Of a stretch of 64,000 nt of DNA, positions 16,034 to 63,549 are shown piece after piece. Under the pieces are notes generated by a model. The model was not told the origin of the DNA and ran no database searches. It was given only the letters and a program-made list of their open reading frames with translations. The DNA lies in IMG/VR virus record IMGVR_UViG_3300017917_001996, positions 1 through 64,000 of that record. The stretch is one strand, 5' to 3'. Numbering within the stretch: the stretch's first letter is position 1; each line of letters starts with the position of its first letter. Both the position numbers and the translations under genes were made by a program.

Positions 16034-16585
16034 ATGAAACATACTCACCACATTATACCGAGACATATGGGCGGATCTGACGACCCATCGAATTTAGTAG
16101 AATTAACCATCGAAGAACATGCAGAAGCACATCGTTTGCTCTATGAACAACATGGCCATTGGCAAGATAAAGTTGCTTGGCGCGGATTGTTAGGGCTAAT
16201 AGGACACGAAGATATTATGCGAGAAATGTATGATGCCAGAAAAGGCAAAGGCAATGTTATGTATAGAAAACCTTGTTTTTACAAAATGACAGATGAAGAA
16301 AAAGAACGCTGGAAAGACAATTTAAGCAAAGCCAAAAAAGGCAAAAAGAAACCGGATGGGTTTAAAGAAAAATTAAGTAAAAGAAATTCCGGAGAAGGTA
16401 ATCCTATGTACGGAAAAGAGCCCTGGAACAAAGGAAAACAAATTGGTCCACAATCTGCCGAATCAAGACGAAAAAAAGGAAAACCCCTGATTTACAAAGG
16501 CATTGAGTACAATAGTATCAACGAAGCAGAAAAATTAACAGGCATTAGTGCTTATAAAATAACCAAAGACTGCAAATTTATTTAA
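16034..16585 (+). mobile_element. HNH homing endonuclease with NUMOD3-like repeats
   Basis: HHIIPRHMGGSDDPSNLVELTIEEHAEAH; GEGNPMYGK; CTAAATA promoter at 16022. Confidence 0.85.
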
Positions 16586-17754: not shown

Positions 17755-18259
17755 TTAAATTCCTCTTACATTTTTCAAAATGATATCTTGTCATATTTGC
17801 GCCTTTGCCTGTAACCCCGCAATGCGGGCAACTTCTATTAGGCTGTCTTGCTTGAGCATCTTTTAGTTTTTGTTTCCACTCAGAAGAAAACGGTTCTCTA
17901 ACCTTTCCTTTGTGAGCTTCGGATATTTTTCTTTTATGTTCTTCACTTTTGCTTTTACCAGCAAGGGCAGCAGCATTTTTATTTCCCTTTAACCAAGGTT
18001 TAGATTTTCCTTTATGAGCTTCGGATATTTTTCTTTTATGCTCTTCGCTTTTCGGTTGGGTTAGAATATCTTTTATTATTTCTGCACCAGTTATCATTTT
18101 TGCCAGGCCCATCCAAGCTCTTTTATCTTCAATTCGACCAAATTGTTCATACAACAGTCGATGAGCCTCTGCGTGTTCCTCAACAGTTAGTTCTATTAGA
18201 TTAGATGGGTCGTCGGTACCGCCCATATGCCTTGGTATGATGTGATGAGTATGTTTCAT
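17744..18259 (-). mobile_element. HNH homing endonuclease with NUMOD3 repeats
   Basis: HHIIPRHMGGTDDPSNL; KSEEHKRKISEAHKGK twice; probable ATG at 18259. Confidence 0.85.
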
Positions 18260-59798: not shown

Positions 59799-59824
59799 CT
59801 AAATATAGTATATAGGTGATTAAA

Positions 59825-60130
59825 ATGAAAAGACTTGGATCAATTTTAGGTTTAGCAGTTTTAATAGCAGTACTACCTGCTTGTGCTCAACATCACCATC
59901 ATCAGCATCCTGCATATCGTCACTATAATCATAGCCATAGTCACAATAGTTGGATTGCACCTTTTATACTCGGTGCAGGTGCCACTTATATACTAACTCG
60001 CCCAGCACAACCTGCTGTTCAACCACAAATTGTTATACAGCCAGGGCAGCATATCATTTGTCAACCCGTTCAGGTATACAATTCGTACCGAGGTATGTAC
60101 GAAATCCGACAACAATGTTGGGCACAATAA
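59825..60130 (+). CDS. His-rich small exported protein
   Basis: Signal peptide, HHHHQH, hydrophobic WIAPFILG segment. Confidence 0.6.
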   Translation: MKRLGSILGLAVLIAVLPACAQHHHHQHPAYRHYNHSHSHNSWIAPFILGAGATYILTRPAQPAVQPQIVIQPGQHIICQPVQVYNSYRGMYEIRQQCWAQ

Positions 60131-60182: not shown

Positions 60183-61163
60183 ATGAACAAACGAGTTATT
60201 ATTACCGGAGCCATGGGCTTCATTGGTAGCCATACCGCCAAAATATTTAAGGAAGCCGGTTATCACGTTATCGGTGTTGACCACGCCCAGACCATACCAC
60301 AAGCGTCAATATATATAGATCAACTGTTTACTGATGACTTTGTCAAAATTACTGCCGCGGCTGCGACAGTCAACGACGTTGATGCAATTATTCATTGCGC
60401 CGGTACAAGCCTAGTAGGCCCAAGTATTAAACATCCTCACTTATATTTTTGGAACAACGGCTGTAAAACAAACGATCTGCTCGAAGGCTTACAAAAAAAC
60501 AATTGGCATGGTAAGTTTATCTTTAGTAGCAGTGCTGCCGTCTATGGCGTACCCGAAGGTAACAGGCCATTATTTGAAACAGATCACTTAGCGCCTATTA
60601 GTCCGTACGGAAAAAGTAAATGGATCTGTGAAGAAATAATTCACGATCATTGCCATGCACACAAATTCAAAGGCATTGCTTTACGTTACTTTAATGCCAG
60701 CGGTTGCGACCCAGATGGAACATTAGGCCATGTCATTGACGATACCCACATGATTCCTAGAGTATTAAGTGCATATCGACGCGGCGAAACATTTACCCTT
60801 TATGGCAATGACTACAGCACCCGAGATGGCACTTGTGTTCGAGATTATCTACACGTTGTTGATATTGCAAGAGCACATTTAGAAGCAGTATGTCTAGCTG
60901 ATTCTATGCTCAAAGGCGAATTCCGTGCTTACAATTTAGGTACTGGCCAAGGGCATAGTAATAAAGAAATTATCTGGTCTTGTAATTGGGCTGTTAGAGA
61001 TAAGATTAATTTCGTTATCGGTCCTAGACGCATCGGCGATCCAGATTATCTAGTTGCCAACAGCGATTGTTTTCAACAAGATACAAGTTGGCGTCCGGAT
61101 AATAGCAGTATTGAAAATATTGTAACCACAGCCTGGGCTTGGGAACGTAAACATGGGTCTTAA
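60183..61163 (+). CDS. galE: UDP-glucose 4-epimerase
   Basis: TGAMGFIGSH, FSSSAAVYG, YGKSK, LRYFN, DGTCVRDYLHV. Confidence 0.9.
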   Translation: MNKRVIITGAMGFIGSHTAKIFKEAGYHVIGVDHAQTIPQASIYIDQLFTDDFVKITAAAATVNDVDAIIHCAGTSLVGPSIKHPHLYFWNNGCKTNDLLEGLQKNNWHGKFIFSSSAAVYGVPEGNRPLFETDHLAPISPYGKSKWICEEIIHDHCHAHKFKGIALRYFNASGCDPDGTLGHVIDDTHMIPRVLSAYRRGETFTLYGNDYSTRDGTCVRDYLHVVDIARAHLEAVCLADSMLKGEFRAYNLGTGQGHSNKEIIWSCNWAVRDKINFVIGPRRIGDPDYLVANSDCFQQDTSWRPDNSSIENIVTTAWAWERKHGS

Positions 61164-61167
61164 TACC

Positions 61168-61196
61168 TTGACTACGCAATCTAAATACTGTACAAT
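61168..61196 (+). promoter_or_regulatory. Sigma70-like promoter with nested CTAAATA
   Basis: TTGACT-N17-TACAAT. Confidence 0.7.
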
Positions 61197-61239
61197 TAAT
61201 ATAACGACATCCTCGTCGTAAACTCGGAGAAAAACTATA

Positions 61240-61323
61240 ATGACTGAAAAAAATCTAGCACAAGTCCTTCGCGAACGCATGAAGGCCAACGGCAAACGAT
61301 TCTGGGCCGGTGATAATGTATAA
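61240..61323 (+). pseudogene. N-terminal remnant of a displaced phage-type folE
   Basis: GGAG RBS; MTEKNLAQVLRERMKANGKRFWAGDNV*, truncated where TATAAATA begins. Confidence 0.6.
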
Positions 61324-61389
61324 ATACCATTGCTACACAAAGGTAGCAAACTTTTTAAAATTAACATCCGTGTAAGGAAGGATACAAAT

Positions 61390-62073
61390 ATGTCGTATAA
61401 CAAAACAAAAACCGACCCAGTATTGGGTAAAGCAGTACATGAGCATTTGGTAAAATGTGGTGTAGAAACTCCTACAGTTCCTAACGACATTGATCGTAAA
61501 GACAAGATTGAGCAGATCGAAAGTCACTTTACAGAAATCATGAAGATAATGGGCCTGGATCTCAACGACGACAGTTTAATCGAAACACCCAAGCGTGTGG
61601 CAAAAATGTATGTCAATGAAATCTTTTGGGGGTTGGACTACGAAGCATTTCCAAAATGCACAGCAGTAGAAAACAAAATGAAGTACGATGAAATGGTCAT
61701 TGAACGCAACGTCAATGTTCAGAGTAACTGTGAACATCACTTTGTTGTAATTGATGGACTAGCAACTGTGGCCTATATTCCTAATCAAAAGGTTTTAGGT
61801 CTTAGCAAAATCAATCGTGTAGTGGAATACTTCTCTAAGCGTCCGCAGATTCAAGAACGATTAACTGAACAGATCTATCACGCACTACAATACATTCTTG
61901 GCACAGACAATATCGCTGTAGTTGTCGATGCTCAACACTATTGTGTGAAAAGTCGAGGTGTTGAAGATGTCGGATCAAGTACAGTCACCAGCAAGTTAGG
62001 TGGTGTATTTAAATCCGATCCTGCTGTGCGTAACGAGTTTATGAACATTGTTAATGCTTGTAAAACAAAATAA
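61390..62073 (+). CDS. folE: GTP cyclohydrolase I
   Basis: ETPKRVAKMY, SNCEHH, GLSKINR, RPQIQERLT, HYCVKSRG. Confidence 0.95.
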   Translation: MSYNKTKTDPVLGKAVHEHLVKCGVETPTVPNDIDRKDKIEQIESHFTEIMKIMGLDLNDDSLIETPKRVAKMYVNEIFWGLDYEAFPKCTAVENKMKYDEMVIERNVNVQSNCEHHFVVIDGLATVAYIPNQKVLGLSKINRVVEYFSKRPQIQERLTEQIYHALQYILGTDNIAVVVDAQHYCVKSRGVEDVGSSTVTSKLGGVFKSDPAVRNEFMNIVNACKTK

Positions 62074-62074
62074 G

Positions 62075-62680
62075 TTATCTACCTAAAAACTTATAATCGT
62101 ATCTCTTTTTAAGTAGATACGGTGTAGTGTTAAAATGTCGTGATGCGGCTCCTATAGTAGGAAAGGTTATGCCTTCGACTACTATAGGGCGAACATTAGG
62201 ATTGTTATTATTTTGACTCATCCTTTTTCGCTGTGCTGGATCTTTCATTGGATTGTTTTCTACCATGCGTTTACGAACTTGTTCAATAATTTCTGGTGTA
62301 GAAAAAATGTTATCTTTCCCTCTTTTGTAAGATCCTCGGGCTTTACGAGTAGCAGACATCTTAACATACGATTCCGGAGTGCAGTATATTTGTGGGGTTG
62401 GACACTTGGAAGTATCATACTTGGCATTAAACAATTTATAGGCATACATCATTCTGTATCGGTTTGCACCCTTAACCATTTCAATTAACAGTCTATGACA
62501 TACTCTGTGTTCTTTGTAGGTAAGCACCACAAGATTACTCGGATCATCTGTGCCGCCAAATGACCGTGGAATGATGTGATGCGTTTGAAATCCATCATTT
62601 CGTTCTTTAAGGTGATTACGCTGAATAGAACGATTGATTATTCTATAATAAACCTTGGTGTATTTGTTATCTAAAAACAT
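62075..62680 (-). mobile_element. HNH homing endonuclease
   Basis: HHIIPRSFGGTDDPSNLVVLTYKEHRVCH; C-terminal DNA-binding-like repeats. Confidence 0.85.
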
Positions 62681-62741
62681 TGACTCTTCCTATATGATAT
62701 GTTAAACTTAAATATATTTATCAAAATGGATGTTGTGACAA

Positions 62742-62855
62742 ATGAATAAACTTACACAAACCACTGTACTGCACGGCGCATTCCGTACTGATCCAAGCGT
62801 TAAAAAAGAGTTTATGGACAATATTAAGCTACAGCAAGACTGGGCTCCACGTTAA
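62742..62855 (+). pseudogene. C-terminal remnant of a displaced folE
   Basis: LTQTTVLHGAFRTDPSVKKEFMDNI aligns with the FolE C-terminus STVTSKLGGVFKSDPAVRNEFMNIV. Confidence 0.8.
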
Positions 62856-62871
62856 TTAGAAAGGACTTAAC

Positions 62872-63549
62872 ATGACCGCTATTGTTTATCGAGGTGCTGC
62901 TGCTATTAACCAAGCCATGGGCCGTGTCTATGGACACATGGCTGCGGCTATTTTTACCAGCATGGTTATTAGTTATCTAGTAGGAACTTCCGCTGCATTG
63001 ATGGAATTTTTCTTTACTGGATTTACCAAGTGGGTTGTAATCTTTGCACCCTTGGCATTTATATTTTTAGTTCCTATTTTGCTCAATGCAGGACTTCCTA
63101 AAATCGGTAAGGTGCTGACCTTGCACGCCTTTGCTGGCCTTATGGGCTTGAGCTTTGCCACTATCTTTGCAGTCTACACCATGGGCAGTATTGTTAGTGC
63201 ATTTATGAGTGGTGCCGTGTTGTTTGGGGTTATGAGCTTGTATGGTTACTTTACCAAGCAGAGCCTAGACAGCCTTGGCAAGTATTTGCTAGTAGGCCTA
63301 ATTGCAATTATCATTGCCAGCATTATCAATATCTTTGTTGGCAGCACTGTAGCACAAATGGTAATCAGCGCCATTGCTATTCTTATCTTCCTGGGCCTTA
63401 CTGCCTACGATACACAACAAATTAGAGAAATGGTAATGACTGACTCCGACGACAGTGTTGAGATTTCTGGTGCGCTAACTTTGTATCTGGATTTCATTAA
63501 CTTGTTCCTGAGTCTGCTGCAACTATTCGGAAATAAAAAGGATGATTAA
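62872..63549 (+). CDS. Bax inhibitor-1/YccA family membrane protein
   Basis: 7 TM helices; TAYDTQQI, GALTLYLDFINLFLSLL. Confidence 0.92.
   Translation: MTAIVYRGAAAINQAMGRVYGHMAAAIFTSMVISYLVGTSAALMEFFFTGFTKWVVIFAPLAFIFLVPILLNAGLPKIGKVLTLHAFAGLMGLSFATIFAVYTMGSIVSAFMSGAVLFGVMSLYGYFTKQSLDSLGKYLLVGLIAIIIASIINIFVGSTVAQMVISAIAILIFLGLTAYDTQQIREMVMTDSDDSVEISGALTLYLDFINLFLSLLQLFGNKKDD

Follow-up and report, generated by a model that had tools for sequence, protein, structure and literature searches.

How does a phage come to carry a complete gene for GTP cyclohydrolase I (folE) and a nuclease gene between two short open reading frames that both resemble parts of FolE? This question was raised by a region of an uncultured freshwater jumbo phage (IMG/VR record IMGVR_UViG_3300017917_001996, 250 kb), of which the first 64,000 nucleotides were analysed (the window). 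In the original prediction the 27-aa ORF at 61240-61323, with its own promoter and RBS, and the 37-aa ORF at 62742-62855 had been proposed to be the two ends of a resident folE, which was destroyed by a cassette of a different folE and an HNH homing endonuclease gene. The N-terminal assignment had been regarded as the less certain one. As described below, this observation was confirmed, while the proposed explanation was only partly supported. The features of the locus are summarized in Table 1.

Table 1. Features of the folE locus (positions in the window). L011, L216, L235 and others are loci of related phages, X2 and X7 are sequencing runs; folE-A and folE-B are the two folE types, folE-A* is the recoded folE-A.
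Position	Strand	Feature	Basis
61168-61196	+	Sigma-70-like promoter (TTGACT-17-TACAAT) of the former folE-A, now upstream of the N-terminal stub; could read into the cassette	10 of 12 matches; equivalent TTGACA-17-TACACT upstream of the stub in L216
61204-61219	+	Small hairpin in the folE-A 5' leader (ACGAC..GTCGT), followed by AACTCGGAGAAAAA (RBS)	Same leader motif precedes the folE-A stubs of L216 and L136
61240-61317	+	N-terminal remnant of resident folE-A, codons 1-26, ending ...RFWAGDN; the ORF runs on to a stop at 61321-61323 supplied by the cassette	98 of 99 nt identical to the start of an intact folE-A contig in X2
61319-61389	+	Left end of the imported module: TATAAATA (T4-late-promoter-like, 61319-61326), conserved hairpin (61330-61349), CCGTGT, RBS AAGGAAGGA (61374-61382)	Homology to more than 50 folE-B loci starts at 61313-61321; covariation in 4 of 5 stem pairs; no Rfam family
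61390-62073	+	folE-B, complete GTP cyclohydrolase I gene of the E. coli/KVP40 type (227 aa; CEHH and QHYC present)	PF01227, E 9e-63, profile positions 1-178 of 179; phrog_2197, E 2e-76; 80-91% identity to folE-B of many related jumbo-phage contigs
62075-62680	-	Free-standing Mob-like HNH homing endonuclease gene (201 aa); last ~28 nt (62075-62102) still resemble the antisense of a folE-A* tail	PF01844, E 1e-5; PHROG 655 'homing endonuclease', E 6e-23; mosaic by recombination
62681-62726	-	HNH upstream region with ATAAATA (62721-62715), ends at the conserved joint with old folE-A DNA	70 nt 89% identical to L216, including a 50-nt run without a difference; conserved across HNH loci
62103-62726		Segment missing in an HNH-deleted derivative of the same cassette in another study (DNA run X2, RNA run X7)	Joint 62102>62727 with no letters between; contig otherwise 1 difference from the window over folE-B
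62727-62738	+	TGGATGTTGTGA, first bases of the old folE-A 3' part (codons G-C-C-E of ...THGCCENRG...) and right half of the inferred HNH target	Same joint in all HNH loci; in L235 and L254 it reads on uninterrupted into ENRGIMAHSSLTQ
62739-62750	+	12-nt filler (CAAATGAATAAA) replacing 28 nt (..NRGIMAHSS); supplies the ATG of the 37-aa ORF	L216 keeps the 28 nt after a 20-nt filler
62751-62855	+	C-terminal remnant of resident folE-A (codons about 214-248 plus stop)	92% identical to L011

First, it was determined whether the two short ORFs are more than chance. In a tblastn search against 2.3 Gb of phage DNA the only hit of the 27-aa sequence was in the N-terminal part of a Rhizobium phage FolE, while the 37-aa sequence matched FolE C-termini in 64 records. 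A DNA search of the phage collection yielded only about 65-70% identity to folE of cultured phages and no close relative of the locus. As an alternative approach, the FolE of an intact syntenic relative (L011) was searched against the whole 250-kb record. It revealed the C-terminal piece with an E value of 1e-17 (89% identity, residues 212-248) and the N-terminal piece with an E value of 1e-5 (62% identity, residues 20-45), and no other copy of this type. It had been noted that the 27-aa ORF stops exactly where TATAAATA begins, and indeed its stop lies inside TATAAATA, the region at which the homology to folE-B loci starts. One correction was necessary: the old 3' part does not start with the 37-aa ORF, but already at 62727.

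Because the record is a metagenomic contig from a community that holds many related phages, with many folE-A variants in the source sample, an assembly chimera had to be considered. An independent assembly of the source run bridged 60900-62851 at depth 99 with 0 differences, and contigs of a second study bridged the left joint and the joint of folE-B to the stub. In addition, two similar loci described below, L216 and L136, came from other projects. An artefact is therefore extremely unlikely. The remnants might also have been exons of a split or spliced gene, but this was rejected because about 170 central codons, including the CSHHH catalytic motif, are absent from the record. An Rfam scan of 61100-62900 at E values up to 10 yielded only noise and no intron, riboswitch or other family, and folE-B is uninterrupted. 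The HNH gene is thus free-standing, an ORF of its own on the opposite strand.

Next, it was analysed whether the two remnants belong to a single gene. Both are ends of one FolE lineage, designated type A (CSHHH and HGCCEN motifs), which is continuous at this very position, between an epimerase gene and Bax1-I, in L011 (epimerase 76% identical) and in the related phages L004/5, L014 and L007/8/12. In an independent sample, run X2, a 652-nt contig with an intact folE-A was found whose first 99 nt differ from the window at 1 base, and a contig of run X3 reads ...GDNVSEYVDEAT past the break. In contrast, the intact folE of the window belongs to a different lineage, type B, which is 38% identical to type A and has a CEHH instead of a CSHHH motif. 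At the DNA level the region is a three-way mosaic with sharp borders at 61313-61321, about 62074 and 62746-62751. The record contains no second folE-A and no intact target site. In ten large related records exactly one FolE each was found, either A or B. Of the genes QueC, TGT/DpdA and PTPS/QueD, only a PTPS/QueD-like gene was found in the 250-kb record.

To unravel the role of the HNH gene, homologues of at least 43% identity were collected. The 27 IMG/VR loci and about 65 metagenome loci (43-51 distinct sequences) that were found all abut the 3' end of a folE, as far as enough flank was present. However, the usual partner is not folE-B. About 50 distinct loci have the HNH gene convergent behind a full-length folE-A that is recoded at ...QATH|GCCEN... 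(folE-A*), and in many of them a second folE-A C-terminal piece lies beyond the HNH gene. The old sequence always resumes at TGGATGYTGYGA (window 62727). Only three contigs carry folE-B together with the HNH gene. The intact alleles described above show that the presence of the element at this fixed site is polymorphic among related genomes.

The alleles with and without the HNH gene were then compared. The pattern Q[AM][TVI]HGCCEN was present in 73 of 75 distinct HNH-less alleles, which carry ...CAAGCNACNCATGGNTGYTGYGAGAATCG... at this site, but in only 1 of 43 HNH-linked ones. The recoded alleles include the classes RMTH..CCEN and EAEH..CCTN. Along the whole gene the two groups differ strongly only at this site and at the tail that overlaps the HNH 3' end. 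The HNH-less set was drawn mostly from close relatives of the folE-A of L011, and thus the contrast is not phylogenetically independent. Also folE-B lacks the target site. This is a difference in sequence only, and the predicted resistance of the replacement to cleavage is inferred from it.

The other two contigs with folE-B and the HNH gene, L216 and L136, represent two further backbones. L216 contains a folE-A stub (aa 1-19), folE-B (89% identical), the HNH gene (84%) and a folE-A stub (aa 205-248). Its folE-B/HNH joint and its right end are the same as in the window, while its flanking genes and its left joint are different. L136 shares the left joint of L216 on yet another upstream flank, and the same folE-B/HNH joint, flanked by folE-A stubs, recurs in it. 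A 43-aa tail between the N-terminal stub and the folE-B promoter in L216 and L136 had no relative in any of the retrieved loci. A tree of HNH genes, built to reveal whether the window and L216 share one cassette ancestor, placed the window with locus L217 and not as sister to L216. A sliding-window comparison showed that the gene is a recombinant, and thus the tree cannot decide and a history as one unit is blurred. The cassette copies of the window and L216 are as diverged (78-90% at the nucleotide level) as the stubs (79%), so the transfer is not recent.

A relative without the HNH gene but with the same layout had been named beforehand as evidence against the proposed swap. Formally, such a variant was found in runs X2 and X7. 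However, it still retains the last 28 nt of the HNH ORF, and its deletion ends exactly at the inferred joint. Therefore, it is a secondary deletion and does not indicate an HNH-free origin. This variant also bears on a simpler scenario, in which folE-B was acquired by horizontal transfer, the superfluous folE-A eroded by deletions, and the HNH gene is an unrelated passenger. The alternative occurrence of folE-A and folE-B, which implies that one would decay if both were present, and the existence of an HNH-less form would fit to this view. However, the insertion lies inside the old gene and not beside it, the right border coincides to the base with the joint of about 50 distinct HNH loci, the HNH-less form has an HNH stub, and HNH relatives were found next to folE in every locus with enough flank. 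Plain redundancy decay is thus very unlikely.

A more serious alternative is that two independent steps took place. In this view the HNH element first homed into folE-A in the usual way, and later folE-A* was replaced from codon 27 to its stop with folE-B by ordinary illegitimate recombination or module shuffling between co-infecting phages, without participation of the nuclease. The overwhelming linkage of the HNH family to folE-A* is in line with this, and the tail-like bases 62075-62102 indicate that folE-B was joined to an existing folE-A*/HNH unit at some point. In addition, folE-B is native to the same variable neighbourhood (GT, epimerase, orf70, Bax1-I) in many relatives, so that donors were at hand, and recombination in this region is rampant. 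On the other hand, the shared folE-B/HNH joint in different backbones with different left joints indicates that in at least one backbone the pair arrived together and destroyed a resident folE-A. Furthermore, the missing part of folE-A ends exactly at the conserved HNH-associated joint. Two independent steps remain possible, but are regarded as unlikely. For the genome of the window itself, folE-B and the HNH gene may have entered as one unit, or folE-B may have been swapped into a locus that the HNH gene already occupied.

Taken together, the locus is best explained, with moderate confidence, as the footprint of a free-standing, T4 Mob-like HNH homing endonuclease that is specialised on the type-A folE of phages, and thus as endonuclease-driven replacement of an enzyme gene in situ. 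The inferred target is the DNA coding for the active-site stretch ...Q-A-T-H|G-C-C-E-N-R.... In the usual form of the element the original 3' 150 bp, from GCCEN onward, survives beyond the HNH gene as a dead stub. In the form of the window and the two other backbones, the protected copy would be a whole gene of another lineage with its own late-type promoter and leader, and the resident folE-A has lost codons 27 to about 197. The likely course would be a double-strand break at the target in a resident folE-A, repair on the right side using the stub as homology, and illegitimate joining on the left after resection, resulting in the lineage-specific left joint at 61317/61318, which shows no clear microhomology. 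The phage would keep GTP cyclohydrolase I activity through folE-B, which offers no target to the nuclease, and the HNH gene can later be lost. The sequence comparisons established the anatomy of the locus, the ancestral intact state, the recurrence of the cassette, the association of the HNH gene with folE, the allele differences at the site and the mutual exclusivity of folE-A and folE-B. In contrast, cleavage at that site and copying into the empty allele, immunity, the repair pathway, the order of events, and the enzymatic activity of FolE-B and its ability to stand in for FolE-A are inferred without biochemical evidence.

Homing endonucleases are usually described as neutral passengers that slip between or into genes without costing the host a function. 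Here, three stages were observed: empty alleles, alleles with a recoded 3' part plus a dead stub, and alleles in which the whole enzyme gene has been overwritten by a distant homologue. If the nuclease really drives this, selfish elements can cause non-orthologous gene displacement in viral genomes, which would be a mechanism for the patchy distribution of auxiliary metabolic genes in phages, and the stubs could be used as markers to find more cases. The allele comparison alone also predicts the nuclease's target to within about 30 bp, a prediction that can be tested directly. It is tempting to speculate further that a homing endonuclease has exchanged its usual recoded copy of the target for a whole non-orthologous isozyme gene, and uses the dead ends of the target gene as portable homology arms. 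Such a natural, phage-borne element could overwrite an enzyme gene in any phage that carries the type-A folE, whatever the neighbouring genes are. This far-reaching view is compatible with the data, but tentative and less likely than not to be true.

Free-standing endonuclease homing as such is known from the HNH Mob enzymes of T4-like phages (MobA-E; intronless homing). The HNH protein of the window has 29% identity to T4 MobD over 163 aa (E 3e-7), and 875 phage records were hit. As in the Mob elements, the free-standing gene has its own late-type promoter, lies next to the gene it presumably cuts, is present or absent among related genomes, and the donor allele differs at the presumed site. 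Classical Mob/Seg elements sit between intact genes and spread by co-conversion of homologous flanks, and are not known to leave a broken target gene. In contrast, the element described here keeps a dead 3' stub of its target, and in the window it is also linked to a complete substitute gene of another lineage, while the resident gene lost two thirds of its length. In the Schizotequatrovirus vibriophages phi-pp2, phi-ST2 and TCU-VP03-AIR1 (PMC3468402) the 3' end of an E. coli-type folE, 59% identical to folE-B of the window (FolE of Vibrio phage phi-ST2), overlaps a convergent mob-like HNH gene. That HNH protein shares only the N-terminal catalytic 82 aa (41% identity) with the enzyme of the window, no folE stubs were reported or looked for there, and KVP40 lacks the gene.

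The architecture of the folE-A*-HNH-stub relatives is exactly that of the mobile endonuclease ORFs (mORFs) of fungal mitochondria (Allomyces atp6; Glomus atp6, atp9, cox2 and nad3), in which an endonuclease ORF arrives together with a foreign C-terminal coding piece that replaces the native one in frame, and the native C-terminus stays downstream as an unexpressed stub (PMC3630166). However, those are LAGLIDADG or GIY-YIG enzymes in organelles and not an HNH enzyme in phages, and the window contains no in-frame fusion. Instead, the replacement piece has grown to a separate, whole non-orthologous gene with its own promoter, and an N-terminal stub exists too. Lastly, the logic is the same as that of the synthetic Cleave-and-Rescue (ClvR) gene drive, in which a nuclease destroys the resident copy of a needed gene and is tightly linked to a version that it cannot cut (PMC6442612), provided that the phage needs folE and that the inferred cleavage takes place. 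ClvR is engineered (Cas9 plus a recoded rescue), sits at another locus and spreads by killing non-carriers. In contrast, the phage element, as a natural counterpart to such designs, sits in the target locus and most likely spreads by being copied during break repair.

The analyzed region is the first 64 kb of a 250,289-bp IMG/VR virus record that originates from a pond metagenome and is 71% complete according to CheckV. Between an epimerase gene and a membrane protein gene it contains a complete folE gene and an antisense HNH gene, which are flanked by two very short ORFs (see Table). It was verified that the coordinates in the original prediction are correct, and the observation on which it was based is real.

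Table: Positions of the features of the folE locus and of additional features of the virus record.
Feature	Position	Strand	Remarks
HNH paralogue	16040-16579	+	same family as the HNH of the folE locus
HNH paralogue	18140-18253	-	same family as the HNH of the folE locus
HNH paralogue	217033-217152	+	same family as the HNH of the folE locus
104-aa ORF	59816-60130	+	lipoprotein-like signal (..LPAC) followed by a histidine-rich stretch (HHHHQHPAYRHYNHSHSHN)
GalE-like epimerase gene	60183-61163		
5' leader of the former folE-A	61204-61219 and 61222-61235		hairpin ACGACATCCTCGTCGT followed by AACTCGGAGAAAAA
27-aa ORF	61240-61323		N stub of folE-A
Left joint	61317/61318		
folE-B leader	61319-61389		
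folE-B	61390-62073		PF01227, E 9e-63 over the whole profile
HNH gene	62075-62680	antisense	PF01844, E 1e-5; PHROG 'homing endonuclease', 6e-23
Tail resembling a type-A folE	62075-62102		28 nt
Segment missing in the HNH-deleted derivative	62103-62726		624 nt; HNH gene minus its last 28 nt, plus its promoter
Resumption of the old folE-A	62727		codon about 198
37-aa ORF	62742-62855		C stub of folE-A
Bax1-I family membrane protein gene	62872-63549		
PTPS/QueD-like gene	66564-66977		PF01242, E 1.5e-14; just outside the 64-kb region, 3.7 kb downstream of folE

The two short ORFs were compared with 2.3 Gb of phage genomes using tblastn. The only hit of the 27-mer is inside the N-terminal extension of the FolE of Rhizobium phage RHph_I1_18 (...IRERLNNAGVRFWAGDNIS...). 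The 37-mer hits FolE C-termini in 64 records, and the best hit is to Sinorhizobium phage Phosso, whose N-terminal part also carries the ...FFSNDNIS... motif. The two ORFs are the ends of one folE that is different from the intact gene. This "type A" FolE has the motifs CSHHH and HGCCEN, where the intact gene ("type B") has CEHH and QHYCVK, and the two are 38% identical over 156 residues. Type B is 59% identical to the FolE of KVP40-like vibriophages.

To identify relatives of the locus, IMG/VR was scanned with the neighboring Bax1-I protein. Relatives with the order epimerase - intact folE-A - Bax1-I and without an HNH were found, i.e., locus L011, loci L004/L005/L014 and loci L007/L008/L012. 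In L011 the epimerase is 76% identical, the last 36 residues of FolE-A are 92% identical to the C piece, and the identity of the N piece is 64%. A search of the whole virus record with the FolE-A of L011 yielded only the two stubs (E 1e-17 for the C piece and 1e-5 for the N piece) and the distant folE-B.

At the DNA level, the locus switches partners sharply. It is L011-like up to the N stub, similar to folE-B loci from 61313-61321 to 62073, similar to HNH loci from about 62075 to 62746, and L011-like again from 62750. The left joint falls between ...GGTGATAAT and a conserved ATAAATA motif, which opens a 70-nt leader that is found upstream of folE-B in more than 50 loci (including the loci L136-L215). 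The motif is followed by a 5-7 bp hairpin with the loop ACAAAGG/ACAACGG, which exhibits covariation in four of five pairs (e.g., GCTAC/GTAGC, GTCAC/GTGAC, GTAAC/GTTAC), and the 3' part of the leader is either CCGTGTAAGGAAGGA or CCATCACAAAGGAAGG before the ATG. No Rfam family matches this leader, and it could be a translational operator or a small riboswitch-like element. The middle joint is one base between the two stop codons, and the 28 nt after it still resemble the tail of a type-A folE, read on the other strand as the HNH C-terminus.

The right joint became visible only by comparison. In every HNH locus the DNA upstream of the HNH start ends with TGGATGYTGYGA, and in the loci L235 and L254 this reads on without interruption as G-C-C-E-N-R-G-I-M-A-H-S-S-L-T-Q..., which revealed the position at which the old folE-A resumes. 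In the virus record 28 nt of it are replaced by a 12-nt filler that happens to supply the ATG of the 37-aa ORF. In a subgroup of HNH loci (L217, L223, L226, L227, L086) an extra small ORF (starting MNERIRQLAEQAGY...) is inserted right after the TGGATGYTGYGA joint, between the HNH start and the folE-A stub, which pushes the stub 240-290 bp away, and the filler CAAATGAATAAA looks like the remains of its start.

The HNH protein is a member of the T4 Mob-like group (29% identity to MobD; 875 phage records were hit). Three further paralogues of the same family are present in the virus record, with 36-66% identity over parts. The closer relatives of the protein (43-85% identity) form 27 IMG/VR loci and about 65 of the 80 metagenome loci with enough flank, and these make 43-51 distinct sequences. 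All of them lie convergent against the 3' end of a folE, which, with the exception of the folE-B cases described below, is a full-length type-A gene, and many have a second folE-A C-terminal fragment beyond the HNH.

The HNH-linked folE-A copies are distinctive at one place. The motif Q[AM][TVI]HGCCEN is present in 73 of 75 distinct HNH-less alleles, but in only 1 of 43 HNH-linked alleles. The latter read RMTHGCCEN, EAEHGCC[T/I/L/V]N, or QAQH plus a changed Arg codon. The two sets are not phylogenetically independent, and thus the counts are descriptive and do not represent a test. Along the whole gene, the two groups differ strongly only at this place and at the last six codons, which overlap the HNH 3' end. 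The place of difference is also the place where the old sequence resumes. It is therefore inferred that the recognition or cleavage site is about CAAGCNACNCAT|GGNTGYTGYGAGAATCG, and that the linked copies are immune variants.

The folE-B and HNH pair was also found elsewhere. One metagenome contig of another project (L216, 20.8 kb) has the order epimerase (only 43% identical), a 195-aa ORF, a folE-A stub of 19 codons, a 125-nt tail of an unknown ORF, ATAAATA-leader-folE-B (89% amino acid identity), HNH (84%), a folE-A stub from codon 205, and unrelated downstream genes. The folE-B/HNH joint and the right end are the same as in the virus record, including a 50-nt run without a single difference, although L216 has kept the 28 nt that are replaced by the filler in the virus record. 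In contrast, the left joint differs both in the target (codon 19 against codon 26, which is about codon 43 in L011 numbering) and in the donor (-195 against -70 from the folE-B ATG), and neither arrangement can be derived from the other by deletion. The cassette copies are old, with 78-90% nucleotide identity between the virus record and L216. A further contig, L136, shares the left joint of L216 at 96.5% identity, while its upstream flank is unrelated from 16 nt before the stub onward, and it ends 15 nt past folE-B. The 5' leader of the former folE-A is conserved in front of the folE-A stubs in all three cassette-bearing backbones. None of the 80 closest folE-B loci otherwise has the HNH or the stubs. 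Thus, the pair formed once and then came to lie in at least three backbones, each time inside the remains of a folE-A, with at least two independent left joints.

As an independent source of evidence, another assembly of the source run and contigs of a different study were analyzed. Logan's assembly of the source run bridges 60900-62851 without a difference at a depth of 99, and an artefact is regarded as unlikely. In a different study (runs X2 and X3) a 652-nt contig carries the 5' leader and the N stub with one difference in 99 nt, and it continues through a folE-A middle (82% identical to L011) into the C part. This is an intact, uninvaded allele on a near-identical 5' end. An X3 contig reads ...GDNVSEYVDEAT across the break. 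The same run has a contig bridging the left joint and also an 801-nt contig in which folE-B (one difference) is joined from 62102 directly to 62727, i.e., to the old folE-A 3' part. In this natural derivative (runs X2 and X7) the HNH gene is deleted, the deletion ends exactly at the inferred joint, and 28 nt of the HNH ORF remain. The same joint is present in the RNA run X7 (metatranscriptome) of that study. No X2/X3 contig with at least 90% likeness covers 62158-62675. This looks like the late stage of a homing endonuclease life cycle. The original prediction had named relatives with the three-piece layout but without the HNH as a refuting condition, and such a layout does exist, but it is secondary.

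To address whether type A and type B might be interchangeable, ten large related records were analyzed, five found through folE-A and five through folE-B, and five of the ten at least 95% complete. Each of them has exactly one PF01227 match, and the virus record likewise has one complete folE. In addition, it contains the PTPS/QueD-like gene, but QueC and TGT/DpdA were not found in the 71%-complete record, so that FolE could feed either a 7-deazaguanine or a pterin pathway.

Taken together, the sequence comparisons showed that the resident gene was of type A and continuous, that it now lacks codons 27 to about 197, that the gap holds a self-sufficient folE-B and a Mob-like HNH, that the HNH family is tied to one site in folE-A, and that the pair has moved. 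All of this rests on metagenomic contigs and sequence comparison, and recombination makes trees unreliable. The mechanism, including cleavage, immunity, and any need of the phage for folE, is in contrast a matter of inference. In the favored view, which is considered more likely than not, the HNH would cut HNH-less folE-A at the QATH|GCCEN codons, and the right end of the break would be repaired on the stub, which acts as a portable homology arm. When the donor has folE-B instead of a type-A body, the left end would find no homology, and it would be resected and joined illegitimately, which would give backbone-specific left joints. folE-B would restore the enzyme and offer no target. The main alternative, which is possible but clearly less likely, is that the HNH homed in first in the ordinary way and that folE-B replaced the recoded folE-A later without help from the nuclease. 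The 28-nt type-A tail after the middle joint shows that such a step happened once somewhere, but not in which backbone. Plain decay of folE-A with an incidental HNH is unlikely. The original interpretation, that a folE+HNH cassette destroyed the resident folE while supplying a cleavage-resistant replacement, is supported only in part.

A literature search, which was restricted to open-access papers, did not reveal any report of a homing endonuclease linked to a complete non-orthologous substitute of its target gene. The enzyme itself belongs with the free-standing Mob-type HNH homing endonucleases. A convergent mob-like HNH behind folE was noted in vibriophage phi-pp2 (PMC3468402), but that enzyme shares only the catalytic N-terminus. 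In the cultured Schizotequatrovirus phages Vibrio phage phi-ST2 (1422-2769) and TCU-VP03-AIR1, a mob-like HNH gene also lies convergent to folE and overlaps its 3' end. In TCU-VP03-AIR1 the folE itself is annotated as "homing endonuclease" and the HNH as "hypothetical protein", which is probably an annotation slip. The stub-leaving architecture of the HNH loci with a full-length type-A folE matches that of the endonuclease "mORFs" in fungal mitochondria, where a foreign C-terminus is fused in and the native one stays behind (PMC3630166). The inferred logic of the folE-B and HNH pair resembles that of the synthetic Cleave-and-Rescue drive (PMC6442612).
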